A stretch of 64,000 nucleotides of DNA, taken from positions 62,001 to 126,000 of IMG/VR virus record IMGVR_UViG_3300032268_000832. One strand, 5' to 3'. Shown here piece by piece: positions 4,015-56,454 of this stretch; within the stretch, counting starts at the first letter, position 1; each line of letters opens with the position of its first letter. The translations under genes and the position numbers were made by a program. The notes below the pieces were generated by a model. That model saw only the letters and a program-made list of their open reading frames with translations. It did not search any database and had not been told where the DNA came from.

Positions 4015-4030
4015 TGTTATTAGTTTTTAT

Positions 4031-4039
4031 TATAAATAT
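4031..4039 (-). promoter_or_regulatory. Putative late promoter ATATTTATA
   Basis: Motif immediately after the sigma gene stop, 16 nt upstream of ATG 4014. Confidence 0.65.
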
Positions 4040-9625: not shown

Positions 9626-10606
9626 TTAACTTAATTTATTTAACCAATATTCTATCATTTCATCTAACATACTTTCGAAAGTATATTTAGGTTGCCAACC
9701 CAATTTAGTTTTAGCTTTAGTTGCGTCACCTCTTAGATAATGTAATTCTTCAGCTCTTTCAAATTTTTTATCTGATTTAACATATTTTTCAGAATCTAAT
9801 TCTAATTTATTAAAAACATACTCAACTAAATCTTTAACTTTATTTGACATACCAGTCGCTAATACATAATCATCTGGTTTTTCTTGTTGTAACATTAACC
9901 ACATACCTTCAACATAGTCTTTAGCGTGACCCCAATCTCTCATAGCATCTAGATTACCCAGCACAAGCTCATTAGAGAGCCCTAGTTTAATCTTTACCGC
10001 TTCAAGTACTACTTTGTTAGTCACAAAATTTATCCCTCTTCTAGGGCTCTCGTGGTTAAATAAGATACCAGAACTTATAAACATATTGTAAGAGTTTCTA
10101 TAGTTATGGCAAAGACTGTGAGCGTAAAGTTTACTACAACCGTATGGTGATACTGGAATCATTTTAGTGGTTTCTCTTTGGAAATAATCTTGGTCTGATT
10201 GGTTTCCGAACATCTCAGAAGTTGCAGCGTGATATACTTTAGAATTAGGTGAAAATTTTCTTACAGCTTCTAAAACAGCTAAGGTTCCACCAGAATTAAC
10301 ATCTAGCGTATACTTTGGTAATTCAAAACTAATTTGGACATGACTTTGCGCCGCCAAATGATAAATTTCATCTGGTTTTAATTCATTTATAATAGACTCA
10401 ACACTTATTGGGTCTGTTAAATCCATATAATGTAATGTTATTTGGTTTGAGTCTCTTAAATGCTGTATTCTAGTAGTTTGAGATTCTGGTACTGAATTTC
10501 TTCTAATAGTACCATGTACCACATACCCCTTTTCTATCAATAATTCAGCAAGATAAGAAGCGTCTTGTCCATTGGCACCCAATATTAAAGCTATTTTATT
10601 TTTCAT
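9626..10606 (-). CDS. gmd: GDP-mannose 4,6-dehydratase
   Basis: GANGQDASYLA, HLAAQSHV, TSEMFG, PVSPYGCSK, NHESPRRG, RDWGHAKDYV. Confidence 0.95.
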   Translation of the reverse strand: MKNKIALILGANGQDASYLAELLIEKGYVVHGTIRRNSVPESQTTRIQHLRDSNQITLHYMDLTDPISVESIINELKPDEIYHLAAQSHVQISFELPKYTLDVNSGGTLAVLEAVRKFSPNSKVYHAATSEMFGNQSDQDYFQRETTKMIPVSPYGCSKLYAHSLCHNYRNSYNMFISSGILFNHESPRRGINFVTNKVVLEAVKIKLGLSNELVLGNLDAMRDWGHAKDYVEGMWLMLQQEKPDDYVLATGMSNKVKDLVEYVFNKLELDSEKYVKSDKKFERAEELHYLRGDATKAKTKLGWQPKYTFESMLDEMIEYWLNKLS

Positions 10607-11199
10607 TATAAATATTTTTCTTTAAACGCTTCTATTGAAATTAAATTTATTGCCTTTTCTCTATTTTTTTCTAAAAAACTATAATCATAACAATTTTCAC
10701 CATCATTAATTTTTAATAATTCTTGAGAACCCTTTTTAATAATACCACAACCTTCATCAGTGTTTACGGTAAATATTTCCAATTCTGGGTTTTCCATTCT
10801 TAATTGTACAATAGCTTTCCACACATCACCATGCCATGCATCACTCGCGCGCTCTCTTCTTTGAGTTATTTCGGTAACTGGATTACAATCGTGTACAACA
10901 ATAACACCATTGTCATTTAAAAATTCTAAGGAATTTGTTATGTCTCTATAAACTTGTTCATGTAAATGTAACCCATCAACAAAAACAATATCATATTTTT
11001 GAGAAACATGTTTTTCAAAAAAGTCATCCGAGGTCATTTTGTAAGTTGTATCCACATTTGGGTCGACACCGTGTTTAGTTGGAACGTTAACACCAACCCA
11101 ATTATACCCAGGTTGTGCTGGTGTGTTTACACCAATCTCTAAATAAGAAGTGTATTTATTTTTTTCAATTAATCCGTTTATTATTTCTGTTCTTGTCAT
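10606..11199 (-). CDS. Class I SAM-dependent methyltransferase (Methyltransf_24-like)
   Basis: YLEIGV, YDIVFVDGLH, VVHDCNP. Confidence 0.8.
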   Translation of the reverse strand: MTRTEIINGLIEKNKYTSYLEIGVNTPAQPGYNWVGVNVPTKHGVDPNVDTTYKMTSDDFFEKHVSQKYDIVFVDGLHLHEQVYRDITNSLEFLNDNGVIVVHDCNPVTEITQRRERASDAWHGDVWKAIVQLRMENPELEIFTVNTDEGCGIIKKGSQELLKINDGENCYDYSFLEKNREKAINLISIEAFKEKYL

Positions 11200-28408: not shown

Positions 28409-28440
28409 TATAAATATATTGAAAACATAGAATATTTATA
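28409..28440. promoter_or_regulatory. Back-to-back divergent late promoters
   Basis: TATAAATAT 28409-28417 and ATATTTATA 28432-28440 at the strand switch. Confidence 0.7.
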
Positions 28441-28455
28441 ATAAAACATATAAAT

Positions 28456-34077: not shown

Positions 34078-37000
34078 ATGAGCCATACTGAACAAAAAGT
34101 TAGCAATGAAAGAATAGAATCTTTCTTACAAGGTAGTGACCCTCAAAAATATATTGTCGCTGTTGAGTCTTATTATGATAAACCTTACGTATCATTAGTA
34201 GTTAATGATGTAGAGGAAGGTAATAAACGAATAGAGGAACACAATTTCCAACCATTTCTTTGGTTTAAAGAAGATGTGACACAATATCTTTATCAAGGAA
34301 AACGAATGAAAGTTATTGAGGCTAGTAAACATTTTGGTGTTAAAATCACCAAATTAAGAACATGGTCTGAAGATGGTTTTATTCCTGATAGGATGGAAAA
34401 TGGTTATATTTATATGGCTAAGTGTAAAAAAAACTCTAACGATTTAATTAATTTTTTTAAAAACGGTGGTGTCGATATCTTTAGTAAAGAACACCAAAAA
34501 TCTTTTATCATGTTCAGCCCTACTGAACAATTTTTAATTCAATCAGGTAAGCGTTTATTCAAAGGGTTTGAGGATTACGATGATTTGCATAGATTACAAT
34601 TTGACTTGGAAACCGAGGGGTTATTTGCAACTAGAGATGCAATATTTCAAATCGGTGTTAAAGACAATAAGGGTAACGAAGCGGTTATAGAAACAATAGG
34701 TGATTCACCTAAAGATAAACGTGAAAGTGAACGTCAAAATATTATTAAATTCTTTAAAATAATAGAATTTTTAAAACCAGACATTATTGCTGGTTACAAT
34801 TCTGAAAATTTTGACTGGCCTTTTATATTTGAGCGCGCCGAAAGACTTGGATTACCAGTTACTGAGGTTGCAATTACTCTTAGCAGAGCATCAAAGATTA
34901 AAAGAAAACCAGCAACACTTAAATTAGGTGGTGAAACAGAAGCTTATAATCAAACACATATGTTTGGTTATAATATTTTGGATATTTCACATGCTGTTCG
35001 TAGAGCAATGGCTATCAACTCTGAGATTAAGTCTTGGGGATTGAAGTATATTACACAATATTCTGAAATTGCAAAACCTAATCGTGTTTATGTGCCAGGT
35101 GATAAAATAAACGCAACATGGGCCGATAAAGAAAACAAATACGCGTTTAATGATACCAATGGTGATTGGTATAAAATAACTGAGACAAATCAAATACAAG
35201 ATGGTTATGTGGTTAAAACAGGTGCTTTCATTGTTCAAAGATATTTGATTGATGACCTTTGGGAGACTGAACAAATTGATAATATTTTCAATCAAGCTAG
35301 TTTTCTTATCGCAAAAATTTTACCTACTACGTTTCAACGTTCATCAACTATGGGAACGGCTGGACAATGGAAACTTATTATGGCCGCATGGTCATATGAA
35401 AATGGATTGGCTATTCCAGAAACACAACCTAAAAGAGATTTTACTGGTGGTTTGTCACGTTTGTTAGAAGTAGGTTTTGCTAGAAACGTATATAAATTAG
35501 ACTTTGCTGCATTATACCCTAAAACACAGTTAACTTGGGATATTTTCCCAGAATTAGATATAACTGGTGTGATGAAAGGTACATTAACATATGTTGTGGA
35601 TACGCGTGATAAATACAAGTTCTTAAATGGTAAAGAGAAGGGTGTTTTTAAATCTTTGGAGAAAAAATTAAAAGAAGAAAGTGCTAATATGTCACAAGCT
35701 GAGATTGATAAACTTAAAAAAGAAATTCAAGAGCATAAGGCTTTGGCTAACTTGTATGATAAAAAACAGTTACCTCTTAAGATTCTTGCAAACTCATGGT
35801 TTGGTTCATATGGGGCACCATATATCTTTAACTGGGGTGATACAGATTCAGCTGAAGAAACAACATGTCGTGGTCGTCAATACTTGAGGCTTATGGTACG
35901 TCATTTTACGGAAAAATACGGATTTAGAGCGCTAGTATTAGACACTGATGGTTGTAACTTTGCAGCTCCTGATAATTTAAACGATTTTTCATATGTTGCT
36001 AACGGTACTCATTGGAAAACTGAGGGTGAAGGTGGTAAAACACTTTATGGTATCGATGCTGTATTGGCTGAATTTAACGAAACATTTATGATTGGCCGAA
36101 TGGGTCTGGATTTAGATGACGTGTGTACCTCTACAATTAATTTTGCTAGAAAGAATTATGCTAATGATATTGGTGGTAAGATTAAATTAGTAGGAAACTC
36201 TATTAAATCTAAGAAAATGCCAGTTTATATTGAGGAATTCTTAAATAAGGGTATTAGAATGTTATTAGATGGTGATGGTTATTCATTTATTAACCATTAT
36301 TATGAATACGTTGATAAAATATACAACTATAAAATCCCATTGATTAAAATGGCTTCTAAATCTAAGGTTAAATTATCAATAACTGATTATAAGAAAAAAG
36401 CAAAAATGAAAAACAAAGCTGGTAACCCTATGCCAAAACAAGCGCACATGGAATTAGCTATGTTAAATAATTTGGATACTAGTTTAGGTGATGTATTGTA
36501 TTATATAAACACTGGTACTTCTAAATCTCAAGGTGATTTGCAAACTATCTGGGAAAATAAAATGACCAAAAAACAGCTTGAAAAATGGTATATTAACAAT
36601 GGTCAAGACTCTACTCCACCTGAAGCTAAAAGCACTCTTAAAATAAACTGTAAGCTAATCATGCCTGATACGGTTGAGCGAGATTTTGAGGCTATTAAAG
36701 AACTTGAAATGTTGAAAAAAGCTGTTGAAAAAGTAGGTGAAGAAGGTGGTGATGTTAACCAATTTGATGCTAGAATAAAAGAACTGGAATCTACTTTATT
36801 TACTGATGAATACAACGTTGCTAGATATTTAGAAGCTTTCAATAAAAAAGTTAAACCATTGTTAGTTTGTTTTAGTCCAGAAATCAGAGACCAAATTCAA
36901 TTATCTATAATTAAAATTAAAGATAAGGAAACTAAAAAAACATTTGAGGTCTTAAAGGATAGAATTATTTTTACTAAATCTCAATGTAGTTTAATTTCAG

Positions 37001-37839
37001 GTAAACCTTTTAGACCAGTCGACCAAGATTCATATGAGGATTTAATGGTTATGGAAGATAAAGAGATTAAGTTCTGGGAACGCGTTAATAAAGTCCCAAA
37101 TAATATGGAACTATCTGAGTGGGAAGAAATCAAAATAGATTACTATGAAAGAATGAGAATAGCTAAAGAAGAGGGTGTCGTAGAAGAAAAAGAAAAATTA
37201 GATGAAATCTTTAAAAGATTAGAAGTTAAGGATTTTTCACTTATAAGAAAAAAAGGTGAATTACCTATCGATATTTTTATATTATGTGATATTGGTGAGA
37301 ACGGAACTTTGATTTCTAGAAAGTGGGGAGAAACTTTGTGTCATATTAGAGAAATCTTTAAATATGAAAAAGAATCTAGAGAAAGAGATAATTTTTACAA
37401 ACTTAAAAAATATTCAGATGGAGATAATCGTTATGATTTATGGCTTGATTATTTAGAAGAATGTAGAATCATGAGTGGTGAAACAATTAATATTAACACA
37501 GAAGAAGTTGAAATTGATGATTTGACTTTATTGGGTAAATTAAAAGAAAAAGCTGATAGTATTGTAATTGAAAAACCAGTCATTGAAAAGAAAAAGAGAA
37601 CTTACTCTGAAAATGAGGATGATGAAGAAGAATTAGAAGAAGATGAAGAAGGAAACCTTATCAGAAGTGATGAAGAATTATTGTTAGATGATGAATTTGA
37701 TGATACATTCAGTGAAGTACCTGAAGGTTACGTTGTGGATGAAACAGCAATTGTAAATGTTATGGATAAAGAAGCTGAACTTCATGAAACTCCTGAAGTT
37801 GTAGTTAAAGAAGAATCAGAAGAAGATTGGGGTTTTTAA
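34078..37839 (+). CDS. Family B DNA polymerase
   Basis: Exo FDLET, YNSENFD, YLIDD; pol LDFAALYP, KILANSWFG, LDTDG, RKNYA. Confidence 0.92.
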   Translation: MSHTEQKVSNERIESFLQGSDPQKYIVAVESYYDKPYVSLVVNDVEEGNKRIEEHNFQPFLWFKEDVTQYLYQGKRMKVIEASKHFGVKITKLRTWSEDGFIPDRMENGYIYMAKCKKNSNDLINFFKNGGVDIFSKEHQKSFIMFSPTEQFLIQSGKRLFKGFEDYDDLHRLQFDLETEGLFATRDAIFQIGVKDNKGNEAVIETIGDSPKDKRESERQNIIKFFKIIEFLKPDIIAGYNSENFDWPFIFERAERLGLPVTEVAITLSRASKIKRKPATLKLGGETEAYNQTHMFGYNILDISHAVRRAMAINSEIKSWGLKYITQYSEIAKPNRVYVPGDKINATWADKENKYAFNDTNGDWYKITETNQIQDGYVVKTGAFIVQRYLIDDLWETEQIDNIFNQASFLIAKILPTTFQRSSTMGTAGQWKLIMAAWSYENGLAIPETQPKRDFTGGLSRLLEVGFARNVYKLDFAALYPKTQLTWDIFPELDITGVMKGTLTYVVDTRDKYKFLNGKEKGVFKSLEKKLKEESANMSQAEIDKLKKEIQEHKALANLYDKKQLPLKILANSWFGSYGAPYIFNWGDTDSAEETTCRGRQYLRLMVRHFTEKYGFRALVLDTDGCNFAAPDNLNDFSYVANGTHWKTEGEGGKTLYGIDAVLAEFNETFMIGRMGLDLDDVCTSTINFARKNYANDIGGKIKLVGNSIKSKKMPVYIEEFLNKGIRMLLDGDGYSFINHYYEYVDKIYNYKIPLIKMASKSKVKLSITDYKKKAKMKNKAGNPMPKQAHMELAMLNNLDTSLGDVLYYINTGTSKSQGDLQTIWENKMTKKQLEKWYINNGQDSTPPEAKSTLKINCKLIMPDTVERDFEAIKELEMLKKAVEKVGEEGGDVNQFDARIKELESTLFTDEYNVARYLEAFNKKVKPLLVCFSPEIRDQIQLSIIKIKDKETKKTFEVLKDRIIFTKSQCSLISGKPFRPVDQDSYEDLMVMEDKEIKFWERVNKVPNNMELSEWEEIKIDYYERMRIAKEEGVVEEKEKLDEIFKRLEVKDFSLIRKKGELPIDIFILCDIGENGTLISRKWGETLCHIREIFKYEKESRERDNFYKLKKYSDGDNRYDLWLDYLEECRIMSGETININTEEVEIDDLTLLGKLKEKADSIVIEKPVIEKKKRTYSENEDDEEELEEDEEGNLIRSDEELLLDDEFDDTFSEVPEGYVVDETAIVNVMDKEAELHETPEVVVKEESEEDWGF

Positions 37840-41215: not shown

Positions 41216-41229
41216 TATAAATATTTATA
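41216..41229. promoter_or_regulatory. Palindromic late motif TATAAATATTTATA
   Basis: ATATTTATA 14 nt upstream of ATG 41244; readable on both strands. Confidence 0.6.
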
Positions 41230-41243
41230 ATAAAAATACATAT

Positions 41244-50550: not shown

Positions 50551-53406
50551 ATGGCAACAAAAGTGTTCGTAAGTCCAGGGGTTTATACCTCAGAAAAAGA
50601 CTTATCATTTATTACACGTCAAATCGGTGTTACAACTTTAGGTTTAGTTGGGGAGACTACAATAGGTCCTGCATTTCAACCAATTTTTGTAGGCAATTAT
50701 GGCGAATTCCAATCTTTTTTTGGTGGCCAAAATGCTACTAGAGTAAAAGATAACGGTGCACCAAGATATGAATTACCTTATATCGCTAAATCGTATTTAT
50801 CTCAATCAAACCAATTATTCGTAACTAGAGTATTAGGGTTTTCTGGATATGATGCAGGTAAAGCATGGGGTATAACATTACAAGGTACATTAGACCCTGA
50901 TACTGTTGGGGTAACTTCATCAGGAACCACATATAGTCCTATAATTTCATATACAGCAATAACTGCTACTAATGAGGTTGTTAGTGTTGTTTCAAACGTA
51001 CCTTTAATTCAACAATTATATAATGATGGTACTTTAGTAAATCCATTGAATATATTGGGTACTTTCAGTGCTACAGGTAATGTCGCATCTATAGATGTAG
51101 AGTACAAAAAAACAGGTGCTACTTATAGTGGTGTATCATTTAATTTATTTGTTAATTCAATCGGTACTACTGGTTTATATACAACTGGTACAACAACAGG
51201 TGCTACAGTTACTTATTCTGGTTCAGCATATTCTGATGTTGAAAACAAGTTGGTAACTTTATTACGTTCTAGAGGTACAATAAATTCAGCTACACAGTTA
51301 CCTAACTTTGAAGTTAGTGCGGCTACAGGTAATTTAGGTTTTAACCCTACTTATACCGCTGCAAATAGTGACGCTTTAGGTGATTTCGCGTTGACTGGTA
51401 CATCTAATACTCAAGGTGCTTTTAGTTATGTATTATCGTTTGATAAAACAAAACAAAACTACATTACTAGAGTATTGGGTAGAGAAGCTCAAGATGGAAC
51501 AACAGCAATTTTTGTTGAAGAGTTCTATAACAATATGTTTACTGATTTAAACGCTGCTGAAAAAATAGCTGGTATTAATTTAAGTCTTGTGAATTATAGT
51601 GGAGAATTTTCTGATTATCAAAAAGAATACCAACCAGCAGTTACACCTTATGTAGTTTCTGAATTACGTGGTACTAACTTATTTAGATTATTTAGATTCT
51701 GGACAATATCAGACGGTAACGCTGCTAACGAACAATTTAAAATATCTATTAGAAATATTAATTTAGATTCTGGTGAATTTGATGTTGTTGTTAGAGGATT
51801 CTACGATACTGATGCTCAACCAACTGTATTGGAAACATTCAGTCGTTGTACTATGAGCCCAACATCTAATAATTACGTTGCTAGAAGAATAGGTACACTT
51901 GATGGTGAATACCCATCTAAATCATCTTATGTTCTTATTGAGATGGATACTGATTCAGATACTAGCGATATGGTTCCAGCTGGTTTCGTAGGTTTCCCAA
52001 TTAGAGATTACCAAGAAAATAGCAATACAACAGTTGTTAACCCTGCTATTGAGTATAAAAAAGCTTATGGTACATTTGAAAATAAACGTAAATATTATTT
52101 AGGTTTATCTGAAACTGTAGGTATTGATTCGGATTTCTTTGATTATAAAGGGGTTCCTGTAGGACAAACTTATGATATGTGGACTGGTCTTACAAAAGGT
52201 TTCCATATGGACGTTAATGCTACTGGCGCTACAATCGACAATGTATTTGTTGTGATTAACAATAGTGGTGATACATATAATCCAATATTCTTATTTGATA
52301 CTGGTGACGCTGCGTTTAACAGTACTGCTGTAGCAGATGCTAATAATCCATATAATAAAATATATGCGCGTAAATTTACATTTGCACCTTATGGTGGTTT
52401 TGATGGATGGGATATATACAGAACTAGAAGAAGTAACTTAGACTCATTCTTAATCAACGGTACTAATGGTGTTAAAGGTTTAAATAGTGGTGCTTTTACT
52501 AATAGAACACTTACAAACGGTGATTTAGGTATTAATTCAGATTACTACGCATATTTAGAAGCTATTTGGACATTTAAAAACCCAGAAGCAGTTAATATTA
52601 ATGTGTTTGCAACTCCAGGTATTGATACGTTTGATAACAGTAACTTAATTGAGGCTGCTATTGAAATGGTTGAAACTGATAGAGCTGACTCATTATATAT
52701 TTTAACAACCCCAGATACAAATGCTGGTGGTGAGGTTATGTCAGCTGAAGAAATTTCAGATTTCTATTCTGATGGTTCTTTCGATAGTAACTACTCATGT
52801 ACTTATTGGCCATGGATTCAAGTAAACGATACTGAAAATAATGTTTACATTTGGATGCCGCCAACAAGAGATGTAGTTAGAAACATCGCGTTAACTGACA
52901 ACATTGCATTCCCATGGTTTGCTGTTGCTGGTATTCAAAGAGGTGATGTTGACTGTATTCAAGCTCGTAAAAAACTTACTCTTTCTGAAAGAGATGCGTT
53001 ATACGAAAATAGAGTTAACCCAATTGCAACTTTCACATCAGATGGTGTTAAAATCTGGGGTAATAAAACTCTTCAAGTTAAAGAATCTGCTCTTGACAGA
53101 ATCAACGTTAGAAGACTATTGTTACAAGCTAGAAAACTTATCTCTGCTGTTTCTATCAGATTGTTATTTGAACAAAACGATAGTGTTGTAAGAAATCAAT
53201 TCTTATCATTGGTTAACCCAATCTTAGATAATATTAGAGCTGAAAGAGGTCTTACAGACTTTAGAGTGGTTCTTTCAAATGACCCAGAAGATATCGATAG
53301 AAATCAACTTACAGGTCAGATATTCTTGAAACCAACTAGAGCGTTAGAGTTCATCCAATTAGAGTTCGTAATTATGAACACTGGTGCATCTTTCGATAAC
53401 ATCTAA
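50551..53406 (+). CDS. Contractile tail sheath protein (gp18-like)
   Basis: SPGVYTSEKD, G.T..GPAF.P, YWPW, PWFAVAG..RG, NPI, WGNKTL, RINVRRL, PTRALEFI. Confidence 0.95.
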   Translation: MATKVFVSPGVYTSEKDLSFITRQIGVTTLGLVGETTIGPAFQPIFVGNYGEFQSFFGGQNATRVKDNGAPRYELPYIAKSYLSQSNQLFVTRVLGFSGYDAGKAWGITLQGTLDPDTVGVTSSGTTYSPIISYTAITATNEVVSVVSNVPLIQQLYNDGTLVNPLNILGTFSATGNVASIDVEYKKTGATYSGVSFNLFVNSIGTTGLYTTGTTTGATVTYSGSAYSDVENKLVTLLRSRGTINSATQLPNFEVSAATGNLGFNPTYTAANSDALGDFALTGTSNTQGAFSYVLSFDKTKQNYITRVLGREAQDGTTAIFVEEFYNNMFTDLNAAEKIAGINLSLVNYSGEFSDYQKEYQPAVTPYVVSELRGTNLFRLFRFWTISDGNAANEQFKISIRNINLDSGEFDVVVRGFYDTDAQPTVLETFSRCTMSPTSNNYVARRIGTLDGEYPSKSSYVLIEMDTDSDTSDMVPAGFVGFPIRDYQENSNTTVVNPAIEYKKAYGTFENKRKYYLGLSETVGIDSDFFDYKGVPVGQTYDMWTGLTKGFHMDVNATGATIDNVFVVINNSGDTYNPIFLFDTGDAAFNSTAVADANNPYNKIYARKFTFAPYGGFDGWDIYRTRRSNLDSFLINGTNGVKGLNSGAFTNRTLTNGDLGINSDYYAYLEAIWTFKNPEAVNINVFATPGIDTFDNSNLIEAAIEMVETDRADSLYILTTPDTNAGGEVMSAEEISDFYSDGSFDSNYSCTYWPWIQVNDTENNVYIWMPPTRDVVRNIALTDNIAFPWFAVAGIQRGDVDCIQARKKLTLSERDALYENRVNPIATFTSDGVKIWGNKTLQVKESALDRINVRRLLLQARKLISAVSIRLLFEQNDSVVRNQFLSLVNPILDNIRAERGLTDFRVVLSNDPEDIDRNQLTGQIFLKPTRALEFIQLEFVIMNTGASFDNI

Positions 53407-53485: not shown

Positions 53486-53857
53486 ATGAAGCTTATAATT
53501 ACAGAAACACAATACAATAGACTTTTTTTAAACGAAGAAAAAGAAGTATCATTCAATTTTGATAATGACACCATATTGGCGTTCGGAAAATTAATTGGAT
53601 TACCAATGAAAGGTCAAAACGGTTTTTTAGCTGATAGAGCGTTAGATAACCAAGAAGTATTATCTAAGATTTATTCAATTATGACAAATGTTAATGAGAA
53701 GAATAAAATTATCGATGATTTGGGGAATAAAGGTATGGTTGATTCAGATAAAAAACTACATGATAATATTGAATCAATCGTTACAAATTTTAACAAATAT
53801 TCAAAGGATAAAACATTAAATTTGGATACCGTGTTAAATAAAATACTTAGAAAATAA
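53486..53857 (+). CDS. Putative internal head protein with IITETQY leader
   Basis: MKLIITETQYNRLFLNE; leader shared with 58037. Confidence 0.55.
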   Translation: MKLIITETQYNRLFLNEEKEVSFNFDNDTILAFGKLIGLPMKGQNGFLADRALDNQEVLSKIYSIMTNVNEKNKIIDDLGNKGMVDSDKKLHDNIESIVTNFNKYSKDKTLNLDTVLNKILRK

Positions 53858-53896: not shown

Positions 53897-53905
53897 ATAT
53901 TTATA
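53897..53905 (+). promoter_or_regulatory. Putative late promoter ATATTTATA
   Basis: Upstream of tail tube gene. Confidence 0.6.
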
Positions 53906-53968
53906 ATTAAATAATAATTTATTACCAAAAAAAAGGTACTAATACATATCTTAAAAAAAACAAAAATT

Positions 53969-54457
53969 ATGGCTGATTTATTAATGAAAATGCCCCTACC
54001 ATACGAGCCTAAGAAAAAGAATCGTTGGTTAATTACATTTCCAGCTGACTTAGGTATCCAACAATGGTGGTTATCTTCAGCATCTAGACCTTCAATAACA
54101 CAAAATGAGGTTGAGATTCCTTTCCTAAACACATCTACATGGGTTATTGGTAGATTTACTTGGGAAGCAATTGACGTTACATTCCGTGACCCAATTGGTC
54201 CTTCTGCTACTCAAGCAATTATGGAATGGGTTCGTCTTCACTCTGAATCAATCACAGGTCGTCAAGGTTACGCTGCTGGTTATAAAAGACCAGTTGAGTT
54301 AGAAATGCTTGACCCGACAGGTGTTGTTATCGAGAAATGGTTATTAGATGGAACTATGCTTACAAATGTAGGATTTGGTGATTTATCATTTGAGGATGAT
54401 GGTATCGCTGAGATTACAGCAACTCTTAGGTTTGATAGAGCAATCTTATTATTCTAA
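53969..54457 (+). CDS. Tail tube protein (gp19-like)
   Basis: EPKKKNRW, RPSI, GRFTWEAIDVTFRDPI, MEW, LDPTGVVIEKWLL.G, FGDL. Confidence 0.9.
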   Translation: MADLLMKMPLPYEPKKKNRWLITFPADLGIQQWWLSSASRPSITQNEVEIPFLNTSTWVIGRFTWEAIDVTFRDPIGPSATQAIMEWVRLHSESITGRQGYAAGYKRPVELEMLDPTGVVIEKWLLDGTMLTNVGFGDLSFEDDGIAEITATLRFDRAILLF

Positions 54458-54498: not shown

Positions 54499-54526
54499 AA
54501 AAACCATCTTTTTAGGTGGTTTTTTT
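54499..54526 (+). terminator. Intrinsic terminator
   Basis: aaaaaccatct-tttt-aggtggttttttt. Confidence 0.7.
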
Positions 54527-54537
54527 ATTTTATAGTA

Positions 54538-54546
54538 ATATTTATA
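54538..54546 (+). promoter_or_regulatory. Putative late promoter ATATTTATA
   Basis: 11 nt upstream of ATG 54558. Confidence 0.65.
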
Positions 54547-54557
54547 ATAAAATAAAA

Positions 54558-55223
54558 ATGCGAAAATTAGATAAACTAAAAAATATTAGAAAAGTTAATT
54601 TATTAATAGAACAACGATATTTGAGTGAATTTAATGGTGGTGAGAATGAAGTTAGACTTAAACAGTTATACTCTGGTTATTTAGATACTATTTTCCCTAA
54701 TTCTGATATTAAAAAAATACTATACCATGGAACAAAGTCTAAAGAACTTGAAGGTGGGTCTTTTAGGGTATCTCAGGATGGAACATATGGTTCAGGTGTA
54801 TATTTTTTTGATAGAAACCACAAATATAGTGTTGGTGAGTTTGGTGATAATACGATATTTGTTAAGATAAATTCTAGTATGGCGTTTAATAATATATTAC
54901 TTAAACAAGAATGGAGTAAATTAGCAAATAAGTTAAAAGATAGTCCAGATTATCACCATAGGGATTCTTTGAGTGGTTTTATCAACCAATACATTAGAAA
55001 AGAAGGGTATGATACTATTATTGATTATTATGGTTCAGATATAGTTTATGTTGCTTTATATTTAGAAAATATACATATTTTGGGTGATGAAAAAGACATA
55101 TTATCTTTTAAAAAATACGTTGAAGCAAATAAAAATAACCAATTAAATAATGAAATAAAAGATGGTGTTGAAGATTTATTTAACACTAAACCTAATTTAA
55201 AAAATATAAAAATAAATAATTAA
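54558..55223 (+). CDS. ADP-ribosyltransferase-like (ART-PolyVal-type) protein with shared leader
   Basis: LYHGT...G.YGSGVYF...GYDTII...IVYV...IHILG; start moved to ATG 54558. Confidence 0.6.
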   Translation: MRKLDKLKNIRKVNLLIEQRYLSEFNGGENEVRLKQLYSGYLDTIFPNSDIKKILYHGTKSKELEGGSFRVSQDGTYGSGVYFFDRNHKYSVGEFGDNTIFVKINSSMAFNNILLKQEWSKLANKLKDSPDYHHRDSLSGFINQYIRKEGYDTIIDYYGSDIVYVALYLENIHILGDEKDILSFKKYVEANKNNQLNNEIKDGVEDLFNTKPNLKNIKINN

Positions 55224-55231
55224 ATAAAACT

Positions 55232-55648
55232 ATGAGAAGATTTGATAAAAAAATAAATTTAAAAAAAGCAAATATATTAGCAGAACAAAGATATTTGGTG
55301 ACTAAAGGTTTGATTAACGAAGGTCCTATAACAGATGTTGATGGGGTAACCAATGATTTATTAAAAGATTATATTTATGCTTATGATAACGATAAAGATT
55401 TAGGTATGGTTGATGCTAAAATATATGATTTAATGAAAAAAACACTTAGTGTTCATGGTGCTGAACCAGAAATTAAAAAACAAATGTATTTAACCATGGC
55501 TGAAAAATTAAAAAATACAAATATACCTAAATTACAATCGTTTGGTCAAACCTATAGTATGATTGGTAGGTCATTTGGTACTGAAAGCCCTATTGGTGAT
55601 ACTAGTGATATGGTAAATCATATAAAAAGTCAAGGTGGTTTAGAATAA
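55232..55648 (+). CDS. Putative internal head protein with EQRYL leader
   Basis: MRRFDKKINLKKANILAEQRYL matches N-terminus of 54558. Confidence 0.55.
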   Translation: MRRFDKKINLKKANILAEQRYLVTKGLINEGPITDVDGVTNDLLKDYIYAYDNDKDLGMVDAKIYDLMKKTLSVHGAEPEIKKQMYLTMAEKLKNTNIPKLQSFGQTYSMIGRSFGTESPIGDTSDMVNHIKSQGGLE

Positions 55649-55758: not shown

Positions 55759-56454
55759 ATGAATAAACAAGTTAAAAATAAAAAAGAAATTTTAAGTGGA
55801 GACACCTTAGAGATTAAACATTTAAATGGTGTTAAAAGTTATTTAAAAAAAACACCACCTATTGGGAATAGACATGAGGATGCGAAAAGTATTAAAGGTG
55901 ATTATCCTAAATCAATTAATGAATATTTAGATAAAAGGAAAAATGAGGTTCCTATGTATGACCCTAAAACAGGTGAACCAAATCCTTATTATGAAAAGTT
56001 AACTGGTAATAAAAATCCTTTGTTAGAAACACCTAAAATGATAAATCCTAATATTAAAGAACCTAAATTAAAAAATAGGTTTTTAGTTCATTTACCAAAA
56101 GAATTTGGTATTGATATATGGGATGTTAAAAATATAAACAGACCTACAGTTATTTTAAAACCAAAAAAAATTTTAGGGTTAACTTATGGTTATGAAAAAA
56201 ATTGTTCTCAAATAAACATTGAATTTTATGACAAAATACAAAATAAAAATAAAAACCTATTAAATTATTTAGAAACCCAAAAAAAATTCTCATTTTATAT
56301 TGAAGAGTTAGACCCAACTGGTGTTGTAATCGATAGATTTGAATTAAGTCATTGTAATTTAACTTATCTTAGTTTTGGTGATTTAGATTATAAATCTAAA
56401 GAAATAAATAATATTATCTTATCAATTAATATTGGTAAATTAGAATTAAAATAA
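55759..56454 (+). CDS. Divergent tail-tube paralog with N-terminal extension
   Basis: EPKLKNRF...RPTV...IEFYD...LDPTGVVIDRFEL...FGDLDY aligns by eye with 53969. Confidence 0.7.
   Translation: MNKQVKNKKEILSGDTLEIKHLNGVKSYLKKTPPIGNRHEDAKSIKGDYPKSINEYLDKRKNEVPMYDPKTGEPNPYYEKLTGNKNPLLETPKMINPNIKEPKLKNRFLVHLPKEFGIDIWDVKNINRPTVILKPKKILGLTYGYEKNCSQINIEFYDKIQNKNKNLLNYLETQKKFSFYIEELDPTGVVIDRFELSHCNLTYLSFGDLDYKSKEINNIILSINIGKLELK

Follow-up and report, generated by a model that had tools for sequence, protein, structure and literature searches.

The sequence analysed here, hereafter the window, is a 64,000-bp stretch of DNA that covers bases 62001–126000 of the 306,463-bp IMG/VR viral record IMGVR_UViG_3300032268_000832. 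The record has a G+C content of 31% and a CheckV completeness of 86%, and it is the genome of an uncultivated T4-like jumbo phage. An open reading frame (ORF) of 221 amino acids on the plus strand of the window (54558–55223) encodes an N-terminal leader (amino acids 1–31; 54558–54650), an ART-PolyVal-type ADP-ribosyltransferase (ART) catalytic domain at about amino acids 32–177 (54651–55088), and C-terminal helices. The conserved core of the leader spans amino acids 1–22 and ends in EQRYL (amino acids 18–22), and the extent of the catalytic domain was taken from an AlphaFold2 (AF2) model, from fold matches, and from the conserved columns of the family. The ORF opens with the ATG at 54558. An in-frame GTG is located upstream at 54516 and is unlikely to be the start codon, since a promoter-like 11-mer lies inside that extension and every homologue begins at Met. 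Genetic code table 11 was the only one used for translation, and all features of the gene given below are on the plus strand. An earlier note on this DNA had described the product as a leader-tagged ADP-ribosyltransferase-like effector.

A word-indexed protein search with the ART returned three close relatives, and an exhaustive search of representatives returned 480 relatives at E ≤ 1e-3, including 28 at E ≤ 1e-10. Their matches span residues 30–200 of the query, approximately, and many are located within proteins of 1,000–5,000 amino acids. Among 68 aligned domain segments, 55 match the Pfam family ART-PolyVal (PF18760; best E 2e-16), five match DUF3990, and one matches PARP. The relative P0008 (E 5e-24) itself passes the PF18760 gathering cut-off with 34.6 bits, and whole-protein scans detected ART-PolyVal above the cut-off in P0008, P0010, P0012, P0016, and P0045, where P0045 has the domain fused to NADAR and P0010 has it joined to AAA_33 or zeta-toxin-like kinases. 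The domain landscape of the relatives is the one described for "polyvalent proteins" by Iyer et al. (2017; PMC5512222). The ARTs of polyvalent proteins are defined by a His in strand 1, a Tyr in strand 2, and an Asp in strand 5, and an H-Y-[EDQ] clade is told apart from an R-S-E clade (Iyer et al., 2017; PMC5512222). Judged from its sequence, the ART gene encodes a stand-alone enzyme of the H-Y-[EDQ] clade in the Pfam ART-PolyVal/Tox-ART-HYD2 family, and the ART itself is a further member of an already known family. No match to the ART protein was found among the PHROGs, and a PF18760 search of its own genome returned nothing, this being a loose first pass that overlooks the sub-threshold match of the ART. 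Sequence searches of the PDB with 4-sequence and 112-sequence profiles gave spurious matches only, to a shark antigen receptor and to Nup58. Several short ART-PolyVal relatives, P0009, P0044, P0058, and P0115 among them, start with short amphipathic stretches that end in L/I-x-E. To our knowledge, the ART-PolyVal family is well populated, its biochemistry is almost untested, and none of its domains has an established target.

An AF2 prediction from a 4-sequence alignment was unusable, with a predicted local distance difference test (pLDDT) value of 32, and was replaced by one from a 112-sequence alignment, with a pLDDT of 83 and a predicted template modelling score of 0.76. In the latter model, the N-terminal helix of the ART domain carries Y38, Y41, F46, P47, S49, and K52, strands are formed by residues 55–59 (containing H57), 78–84 (containing Y82), 98–104, 153–158, 161–166, and 172–174, and residues 112–148 form a helical insert. 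Foldseek against the PDB placed AcrIF11 (6KYF) first at E 5e-5, with chain B of the cyanophage A4 pre-ejectosome (9K3A) at 1e-4 and with PARP4, tankyrases, PARP1, and diphtheria toxin among the further matches. In VIA-align, the Z value was 9.0 for 9k3a_B, 8.3 for PARP1/PARP2, 8.0 for 6kyf, 7.8 for MbcT, 7.7 for NatT, 7.2 for diphtheria toxin, and 6.9 for ParT. The BFVD database yielded 54 viral matches at E ≤ 1e-3, many of them named PolyVal ADP-ribosyltransferase (down to E 6e-6), and these include a protease-MuF fusion, an N4-like virion RNA polymerase, and solo jumbo-phage proteins. Since the homology search, the AF2 model, and the Foldseek, VIA-align, and BFVD matches all lead to the same family and to the ART fold with its split beta-sheet core, both are regarded as settled, and the ORF product is almost certainly an ART-fold member of the ART-PolyVal lineage. 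The ART-PolyVal assignment made in the earlier note is borne out by each of these lines, and Foldseek, one of the checks proposed there, put ART folds on top rather than some other fold. The best structural match of the ART model is a domain within residues 713–1600 of 9K3A chain B. This chain is inferred from its residue numbering to be A4 gp27, and the A4 pre-ejectosome may carry an unannotated ART-like domain.

The YHGT, GxGVYF, and GYDxII elements that the earlier note had picked out are all present and coincide in position with conserved columns of the 112-sequence alignment. Motif I, YHGT (amino acids 56–59; 54723–54734), contains H57, the His that binds nicotinamide adenine dinucleotide (NAD) in the H-Y-[EDQ] clade. 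Motif II, GSGVYF (amino acids 78–83; 54789–54806), contains Y82 and is located in the model strand 78–84. GYDTII (amino acids 150–155; 55005–55022) contains D152, a family-specific Asp that opens strand 153–158 ahead of the catalytic strand, and motif III, SDIVYV (amino acids 160–165; 55035–55052), has D161 as the first residue of the penultimate core strand, where the catalytic Glu or Asp is located. The element IHILG...D..SF (55071–55109) runs from the last core strand into the C-terminal helix and is a near-invariant hallmark of the subfamily, with H173, L175, G176, D180, and F184 as its hallmark residues. H57 is conserved in 109 of the 112 sequences, D152 in 103, and G80 in 87, and the ART retains all near-invariant positions, namely Y38, Y41, F46, P47, S49, K52, H57, D152, H173, L175, G176, D180, and F184. 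At the start of the catalytic strand, the relatives have Glu in 51, Gln in 12, and Asp in 4 of 110 sequences, and the strand is preceded in them by a loop that varies in length from 2 to about 40 residues. ARTs carry a target-recognition loop in that pre-strand position.

Every ART structural alignment ends at 174–176, which makes residues 172–176 the last core strand and residues 161–166 the catalytic strand. By arithmetic on the aligned ranges (1dtp_A, 5ds3_A, and 6kyf_A) rather than by residue-level superposition, the alignment of diphtheria toxin 12–163 with model 48–176 puts H21 opposite H57 and E148 opposite D161, that of PARP1 816–1001 with model 12–176 puts E988 at 161–163, and that of AcrIF11 −2 to 130 with model 46–174 puts the catalytic D115 at approximately 159–161. 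AcrIF11 is an active ART whose key residues are H-F-H-D, and the D115A change leaves it dead (bioRxiv 10.1101/2024.08.26.609590). The earlier note had considered the usual late catalytic Glu not obvious. The acid is present as D161, which opens the SDIVYV strand and is a conservative, precedented Asp. D152 was considered as the catalytic Asp, being the most conserved acid, and was set aside because the alignments make 161–166 the catalytic strand; both Asp residues are present in the ART, whichever of them is catalytic. In the model, the active site would consist of H57, Y82, and D161, the configuration published for the family (PMC5512222), and the ART is predicted to be catalytically active with reasonable confidence.

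The EQRYL leader that was also singled out in the earlier note proved to be a real module common to many unrelated phage proteins. A profile of its first 25 residues or so, used for hmmsearch of the 306-kb genome, detected three ORFs at E 1e-16 to 4e-19, with the next match at E of about 1. These are the ART, the adjoining 138-amino-acid ORF, and a 199-amino-acid ORF at a distance of 90 kb. When IMG/VR was scanned with the leader alignment, 128 stretches were confirmed, and the 80 loci that were kept all start at the leader Met and run into a cargo of 81–488 amino acids. A word search with a consensus-like leader added 54 protein clusters, none with a Pfam domain, and a word search with ART residues 1–40 returned nothing beyond the ART itself. 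The 131 leader proteins fall into 40 unrelated cargo clusters, in which few domains can be recognised, namely those of AAA_33 P-loop kinases, an ExoX-like_C domain, and the ART; many of the other cargos are orphans. The cargo at L055:3001–4116 is an AAA_33 kinase by Pfam, that at L045:3001–3756 is in the same cargo cluster, and that at L012:3001–4107 has the ExoX-like_C domain. Two of the domain types among the leader cargos are also found in polyvalent proteins, and AAA_33 and ART-PolyVal are fused in one chain, P0010. The leader-tagged proteins have the appearance of a polyvalent protein that was divided up, each part with a tag of its own. The leader gene at L006:5204–5803 (G000:C1 206204–206803) is located 1.4 kb downstream of a gene for a CCA-adding tRNA nucleotidyltransferase, and the L012 leader gene, in the different jumbo phage G001, is located 0.4 kb downstream of a tRNA nucleotidyltransferase gene.

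The leader consensus is M-R-[KR]-F-D-K-x-K-N-I-x-K-[AV]-N-L-L-x-E-Q-R-Y-L-x-S-K-G-[LI]-[IVL]-x-E, and M1, D5, K6, N14, E18, and R20 are invariant among 57 unique IMG/VR leaders. The motif [LIVMF]-x-E is present at positions 16–18 in all 100 of 100 unique leaders and at positions 28–30 in 87 of them, and conservation collapses directly past E30. The ART leader has L16-I17-E18, an L/I-x-E motif, and its core (amino acids 1–22) is strongly basic, with seven Lys or Arg versus two Asp or Glu. Among cultured phages (INPHARED), neither the leader nor the ART had a tblastn match, and the 7-kb region had no blastn match. In prokaryotes (one genome for each of 185,579 species), ten pattern matches to the leader were found and none was confirmed, and literature searches that covered the EQRYL sequence and the capsid targeting of metagenomic phages turned up no description of the leader. 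Within the reach of these searches, the leader-tagged cargo system appears to be a variant of T4 capsid targeting that has not been described before.

In T4, all internal head proteins enter the scaffolding core by way of a short N-terminal capsid-targeting sequence, and the protease gp21 cuts after the Glu of L/I-x-E (PMC3012670, PMC9026906, PMC5694885); T4 Alt loses six residues at ITE-6 (PMC5694885). The genome studied here encodes a prohead protease of the gp21 family (PF03420, 88 bits; G000:C1 about 53.6–54.3 kb). PHROG matches place its head genes in T4 order, portal, protease, and gp23-like capsid. A large terminase is encoded as well, and three small ORFs follow the terminase and portal genes. 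The ORFs of 273, 113, 161, and 412 amino acids that intervene in the head gene order match no family, and only their position assigns them to core and scaffold. The 412-amino-acid ORF at the scaffold position (L007:10410–11648, outside the window) is extremely acidic, with long Glu/Asp runs in its middle third. The gp23-like major capsid protein has 609 amino acids (L007:11682–13511; G000:C1 about 55.7–57.5 kb, outside the window), and its closest cultured relatives, at approximately 40% identity, are Microcystis phage Mel-JY01 and Flavobacterium phages. Its S-L-L-T-E60↓A aligns on the maturation site S-F-L-T-E65↓A of T4 gp23 (T4 sequence NC_000866), and on sequence grounds the tetrapeptide L-L-[ATIVS]-E at the first site of the leader is the same kind of site as the capsid L-T-E↓A. 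Four other jumbo records with leader genes, 1–4 in each, were compared; a gp21-type protease is encoded in three of them, and both records with a completeness of at least 90% are among these three. A complex prediction for the gp21 homologue and ART residues 1–45 scored 0.00 and is evidence neither for nor against cleavage. Given the T4 precedent together with the gp21 homologue, the head gene order, and the capsid cleavage site, the leader is read as a capsid-targeting propeptide.

The ART gene is preceded by the promoter-like 11-mer ATATTTATAAT (54538–54548), 9 nt upstream of its ATG, and by a terminator-like hairpin followed by a T-run (54499–54524; an 11-pair stem with three G-C pairs) directly after the tail tube gene. 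Seven exact copies of ATATTTATAAT are present in the window versus 0.61 expected, and seven were reached in none of 100 shuffles. The other window copies are at 521–531, 4029–4039, and 10605–10615 on the minus strand and at 28432–28442, 41221–41231, and 53897–53907 on the plus strand. Six of the seven are located 9–61 nt upstream of a co-oriented ATG, and the remaining one (10605–10615, minus strand) overlaps the start of the ORF 9626–10606. The genome contains 18 copies, 14 of which have a same-strand ATG-initiated ORF of at least 60 amino acids 8–61 nt downstream (12 within 30 nt), and the genes preceded by the element include those for the large terminase, the tail tube, and the ART. The ART orthologue at L001 has the same 11-mer, and ATATTTATAAT is probably a phage promoter element. 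The T4 late promoter TATAAATA is not enriched (22 versus 18.8 expected), and a scan for the sigma-70 consensus gave fewer sites than in shuffles. The reverse strand of ATATTTATAAT includes the T4 late-promoter octamer, in the wrong orientation.

The gene lies in a tail module (window bases 41244–64000), where the order is sheath (50551–53406), a 123-amino-acid ORF, tube, ART, a 138-amino-acid ORF, a tube paralogue, and a 421-amino-acid ORF whose orthologue gives a weak T4_baseplate match. The tail tube protein (53969–54457, plus strand) matches phrog_4542 at E 1e-25, and the paralogue (55759–56454, plus strand) matches it at E 9e-10 and has an additional N-terminal stretch of about 90 amino acids. 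These two gp19-like paralogues are approximately 27% identical to each other, and the paralogue was not detected at the same position in four related lineages compared. The second leader-tagged ORF (55232–55648, plus strand; 138 amino acids) starts 8 nt past the ART stop codon and is probably co-transcribed with the ART; its cargo, here called X, matches nothing in Pfam or the PHROGs and is without a relative in the set of 131 leader proteins. By tblastn synteny, the sheath gene, the small ORF, and the tube gene are followed by leader-ART, leader-X, and the 421-amino-acid baseplate-like gene in four lineages, across which the tube is 93–94% and the ART 49–82% identical. In related phages, cargo X in the slot after the ART is outright replaced by other leader-tagged cargos, and the ART/X locus looks like a fast-evolving cargo slot within a conserved tail module. 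The ART gene is under purifying selection, with pairwise ratios of nonsynonymous to synonymous substitution rates (dN/dS) of 0.19–0.53 in the four lineages. None of the genes described here is broken. The downstream gene was considered as a conserved partner or antitoxin and ruled out, as it differs between lineages.

The 123-amino-acid ORF between sheath and tube (53486–53857, plus strand) begins with M-K-L-I-I-T-E, and its orthologue at L001 (L001:6588–7001) begins with M-A-K-L-I-I-T-E. The I-T-E at residues 5–7 resembles the ITE-6 propeptide site of T4 Alt, and the ORF may encode a further head protein that is processed by the protease and whose tag is different and shorter. Upstream in the window, a gene for a family-B-type DNA polymerase of 1,253 amino acids (34078–37839, plus strand; phrog_262, E 4e-64) sits between a block of minus-strand genes (1–28400) and the tail module, and near 28 kb, at the switch in gene orientation, the sign of the GC skew is reversed.

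Based on these results, the following course is proposed for the ART. The protein would be synthesised alongside the structural proteins, as suggested by the promoter motif that its gene has in common with those of terminase and tube. By analogy with T4, the leader of about 20–30 residues would bring it into the scaffolding core of the prohead, where the gp21 homologue would, to judge from the motif, remove the leader after L-I-E18. The mature enzyme of about 23 kDa would be transported inside the head and be ejected together with the DNA, for which A4 gp27 provides a structural precedent (PMC12002296), and in the new host it would use host NAD+ to ADP-ribosylate a host target, which may be a defence component or the transcription or translation machinery. 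Injection in the manner of T4 Alt is inferred from the leader anatomy, the gp21-type protease, the capsid site, the shared promoter motif, and the virion location of related domains. On balance, the evidence tips slightly towards a virion-packaged, leader-directed, injected H-Y-D ADP-ribosyltransferase that acts on the host with NAD+; for packaging via the leader taken by itself, which is argued from the analogy with T4, the chances appear even.

Several observations weigh against this view of the ART as a packaged, active enzyme. The match of the ART to PF18760 (18.9 bits, E 0.0028) is below the gathering cut-off of 31.2, and the ART is treated as a divergent subfamily member because that cut-off is a curation threshold and not a biological feature. 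At the active site, Tyr occupies the Y82 column in 61 of the 112 sequences and is replaced by Phe in 31, the nearest subclade varies among Asn, Asp, Glu, and Gly at the start of the catalytic strand, and D161 was placed from aligned ranges. The leaders of the ART and its orthologues are without the boundary [LIV]-x-E at position 30 and have only the internal L-I-E18, and cleavage at E18 only would leave the conserved QRYL on the mature ART. Leader-tagged genes also adjoin genes for tRNA nucleotidyltransferase or endolysin, which are not structural genes; this scatter is taken as neutral, since the internal-protein genes of T4 are likewise scattered. Finally, ATATTTATAAT also heads the block leading to the DNA polymerase gene, and its status as a late promoter is not proven.

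It is conceivable, though unlikely, that the ART is active and unpackaged and works in the producing cell like T4 ModA and ModB, with the leader serving as a basic amphipathic helix for oligomerisation, for binding of nucleic acid or membrane, or for regulated turnover. Such an enzyme would explain the ART fold and the site residues equally well. It would also suit the strongly basic leader core (the seven Lys or Arg versus two Asp or Glu), the occurrence of some leader-tagged genes outside structural modules, and an 11-mer ATATTTATAAT that is not proven to be late-specific. However, the same leader is attached to 40 unrelated cargo groups with its conservation stopping at [LIVMF]-x-E in 87 of 100 leaders, phage and metagenome sequences are the only ones in which it was found, and gp21-type proteases are encoded in those complete genomes with the leader that were checked. 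The position of the gene between tail genes in four lineages also argues against action in the producing cell alone, as does the typical occurrence of related ART-PolyVal domains in virion proteins (MuF fusions, virion RNA polymerase, and A4 gp27; PMC5512222).

The other two alternatives for the chemistry are both improbable. A pseudo-enzyme or NAD+-binding decoy, an option also raised in the earlier note, would sequester NAD+-derived signals or bind a host protein without transfer, as might be suggested by the Asp in place of the usual Glu, by the Asn or Gly found there in the nearest subclade, and by the inactive ART folds of PARP13 and TASOR among the structural neighbours. The decoy is considered the weaker option since the catalytic acid is present as D161 and H-Y-D is the published active configuration of the family (PMC5512222). 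Moreover, H57, G-x-G-V-Y82-F, D152, and the other near-invariant positions are kept, AcrIF11 is active with an Asp and loses its activity in D115A, and the ART gene is under purifying selection. Secondly, an NADase or NAD+ phosphorylase of the MbcT, RES, or NatT type would deplete or reshape host NAD+, for example, against NAD+-dependent defences. MbcT (Z 7.8), NatT (7.7), VPA0770 (6.5), and an Xre-RES toxin (6.0) are indeed structural neighbours with values close to those of the PARPs. Yet H-G-T and G-x-G-V-Y-F match the transferases of the PARP and diphtheria-toxin types, the sequence grouping of the family is with protein-modifying ARTs (PMC5512222), the best match among small proteins is the transferase AcrIF11, and no antitoxin-like conserved partner is present, the downstream gene varying by lineage.

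Loading of the cargo by the leader into the tail (tube lumen or baseplate), like the N-terminal payload domains of extracellular contractile injection systems, would fit a gene that directly follows the tube gene in four lineages and lies between two tube paralogues in this phage, but it is very improbable, given that the leader boundary carries the head-protease motif, that other leader-tagged genes are far from tail genes, and that the tape-measure protein normally fills the tube lumen in contractile-tailed phages.

The leader is a more useful result than the enzyme. It is tentatively proposed, with slightly less than even confidence, that the leader of about 30 residues is an undescribed, widespread capsid-targeting propeptide of uncultivated T4-like phages and that all of its carriers form an injected arsenal. 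If so, this arsenal would comprise at least 40 unrelated cargo groups, including the ART, P-loop kinases, and many orphan proteins, and would extend the internal-protein paradigm of T4 to a large set of environmental phages. The leader would provide a sequence handle to list injected anti-defence and host-takeover proteins from metagenomes, would single out dozens of orphan proteins as candidates for injected effectors, and could be a portable tag with which capsids of this kind are loaded with foreign proteins. It would also account for the rapid evolution of the cargo slot that lies between conserved tail genes. If the leader has another function, the finding shrinks to an ordinary phage ART annotation. 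The solo ART, with its approximately 190 residues, would still be a convenient object for ART-PolyVal biochemistry and structure.

Compared with known systems, the ART shares with ART-PolyVal (PF18760) the sequence and fold homology, the His, Tyr, and acidic residues of the site, the phage origin, and the predicted role as a delivered host-modifying enzyme. Unlike the domains of giant multidomain proteins in that family, it is a small solo protein of 221 amino acids with a dedicated N-terminal leader, and its subfamily has the extra invariant residues Y38, Y41, F46, P47, S49, H173, D180, and F184. AcrIF11 (6KYF) is likewise small, solo, and phage-encoded; it is of the diphtheria-toxin type of ARTs, and its catalytic acid is an Asp (D115). 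However, the resemblance is in fold only, with no sequence similarity detectable by the 4-sequence and 112-sequence profiles, AcrIF11 is not known as a virion-packaged protein, and its target, Cas8f N250, cannot be carried over to the ART. The best VIA-align match, A4 gp27 (9K3A chain B; 117 residues at 18% identity), is a large ejection protein of the pre-ejectosome that was resolved inside the capsid, and it sets an experimental precedent for an ART-like fold within a capsid and in an ejected protein set (PMC12002296). In contrast to the ART, the matching part of gp27 is one domain of a podovirus protein of more than 1,700 amino acids, and ADP-ribosylation is absent from the A4 pre-ejectosome paper (PMC12002296).

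The T4 enzymes are analogues rather than homologues of the ART. Alt belongs to the R-S-E (Alt/VIP2) clade and the ART to the H-Y-[EDQ] one, and an R-S-E configuration like that of Alt, ModA, and ModB is not found in the ART, whose site is H-Y-D and whose structural neighbours are of the H-Y-[EDQ] type. Alt also exceeds the ART about threefold in size, and the two leaders are unrelated in sequence. What the ART is proposed to have in common with Alt is synthesis alongside the structural proteins, carriage in the head behind an N-terminal propeptide that gp21 cuts at I/L-x-E, injection with the DNA, and ADP-ribosylation of host proteins. The closest parallel for the leader-tagged set is provided by the T4 internal proteins IPI, IPII, and IPIII. 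The tag here differs from theirs in its length (30 versus 10 amino acids), its sequence, and its two L/I-x-E sites, it is spread over many uncultivated lineages, and its role in packaging is a proposed one. In both cases, however, unrelated small proteins have in common only a short N-terminal tag that ends in a protease motif, and their scattered, quickly turning-over genes accompany a head of the gp21/gp22/gp23 type (PMC3012670, PMC9026906).

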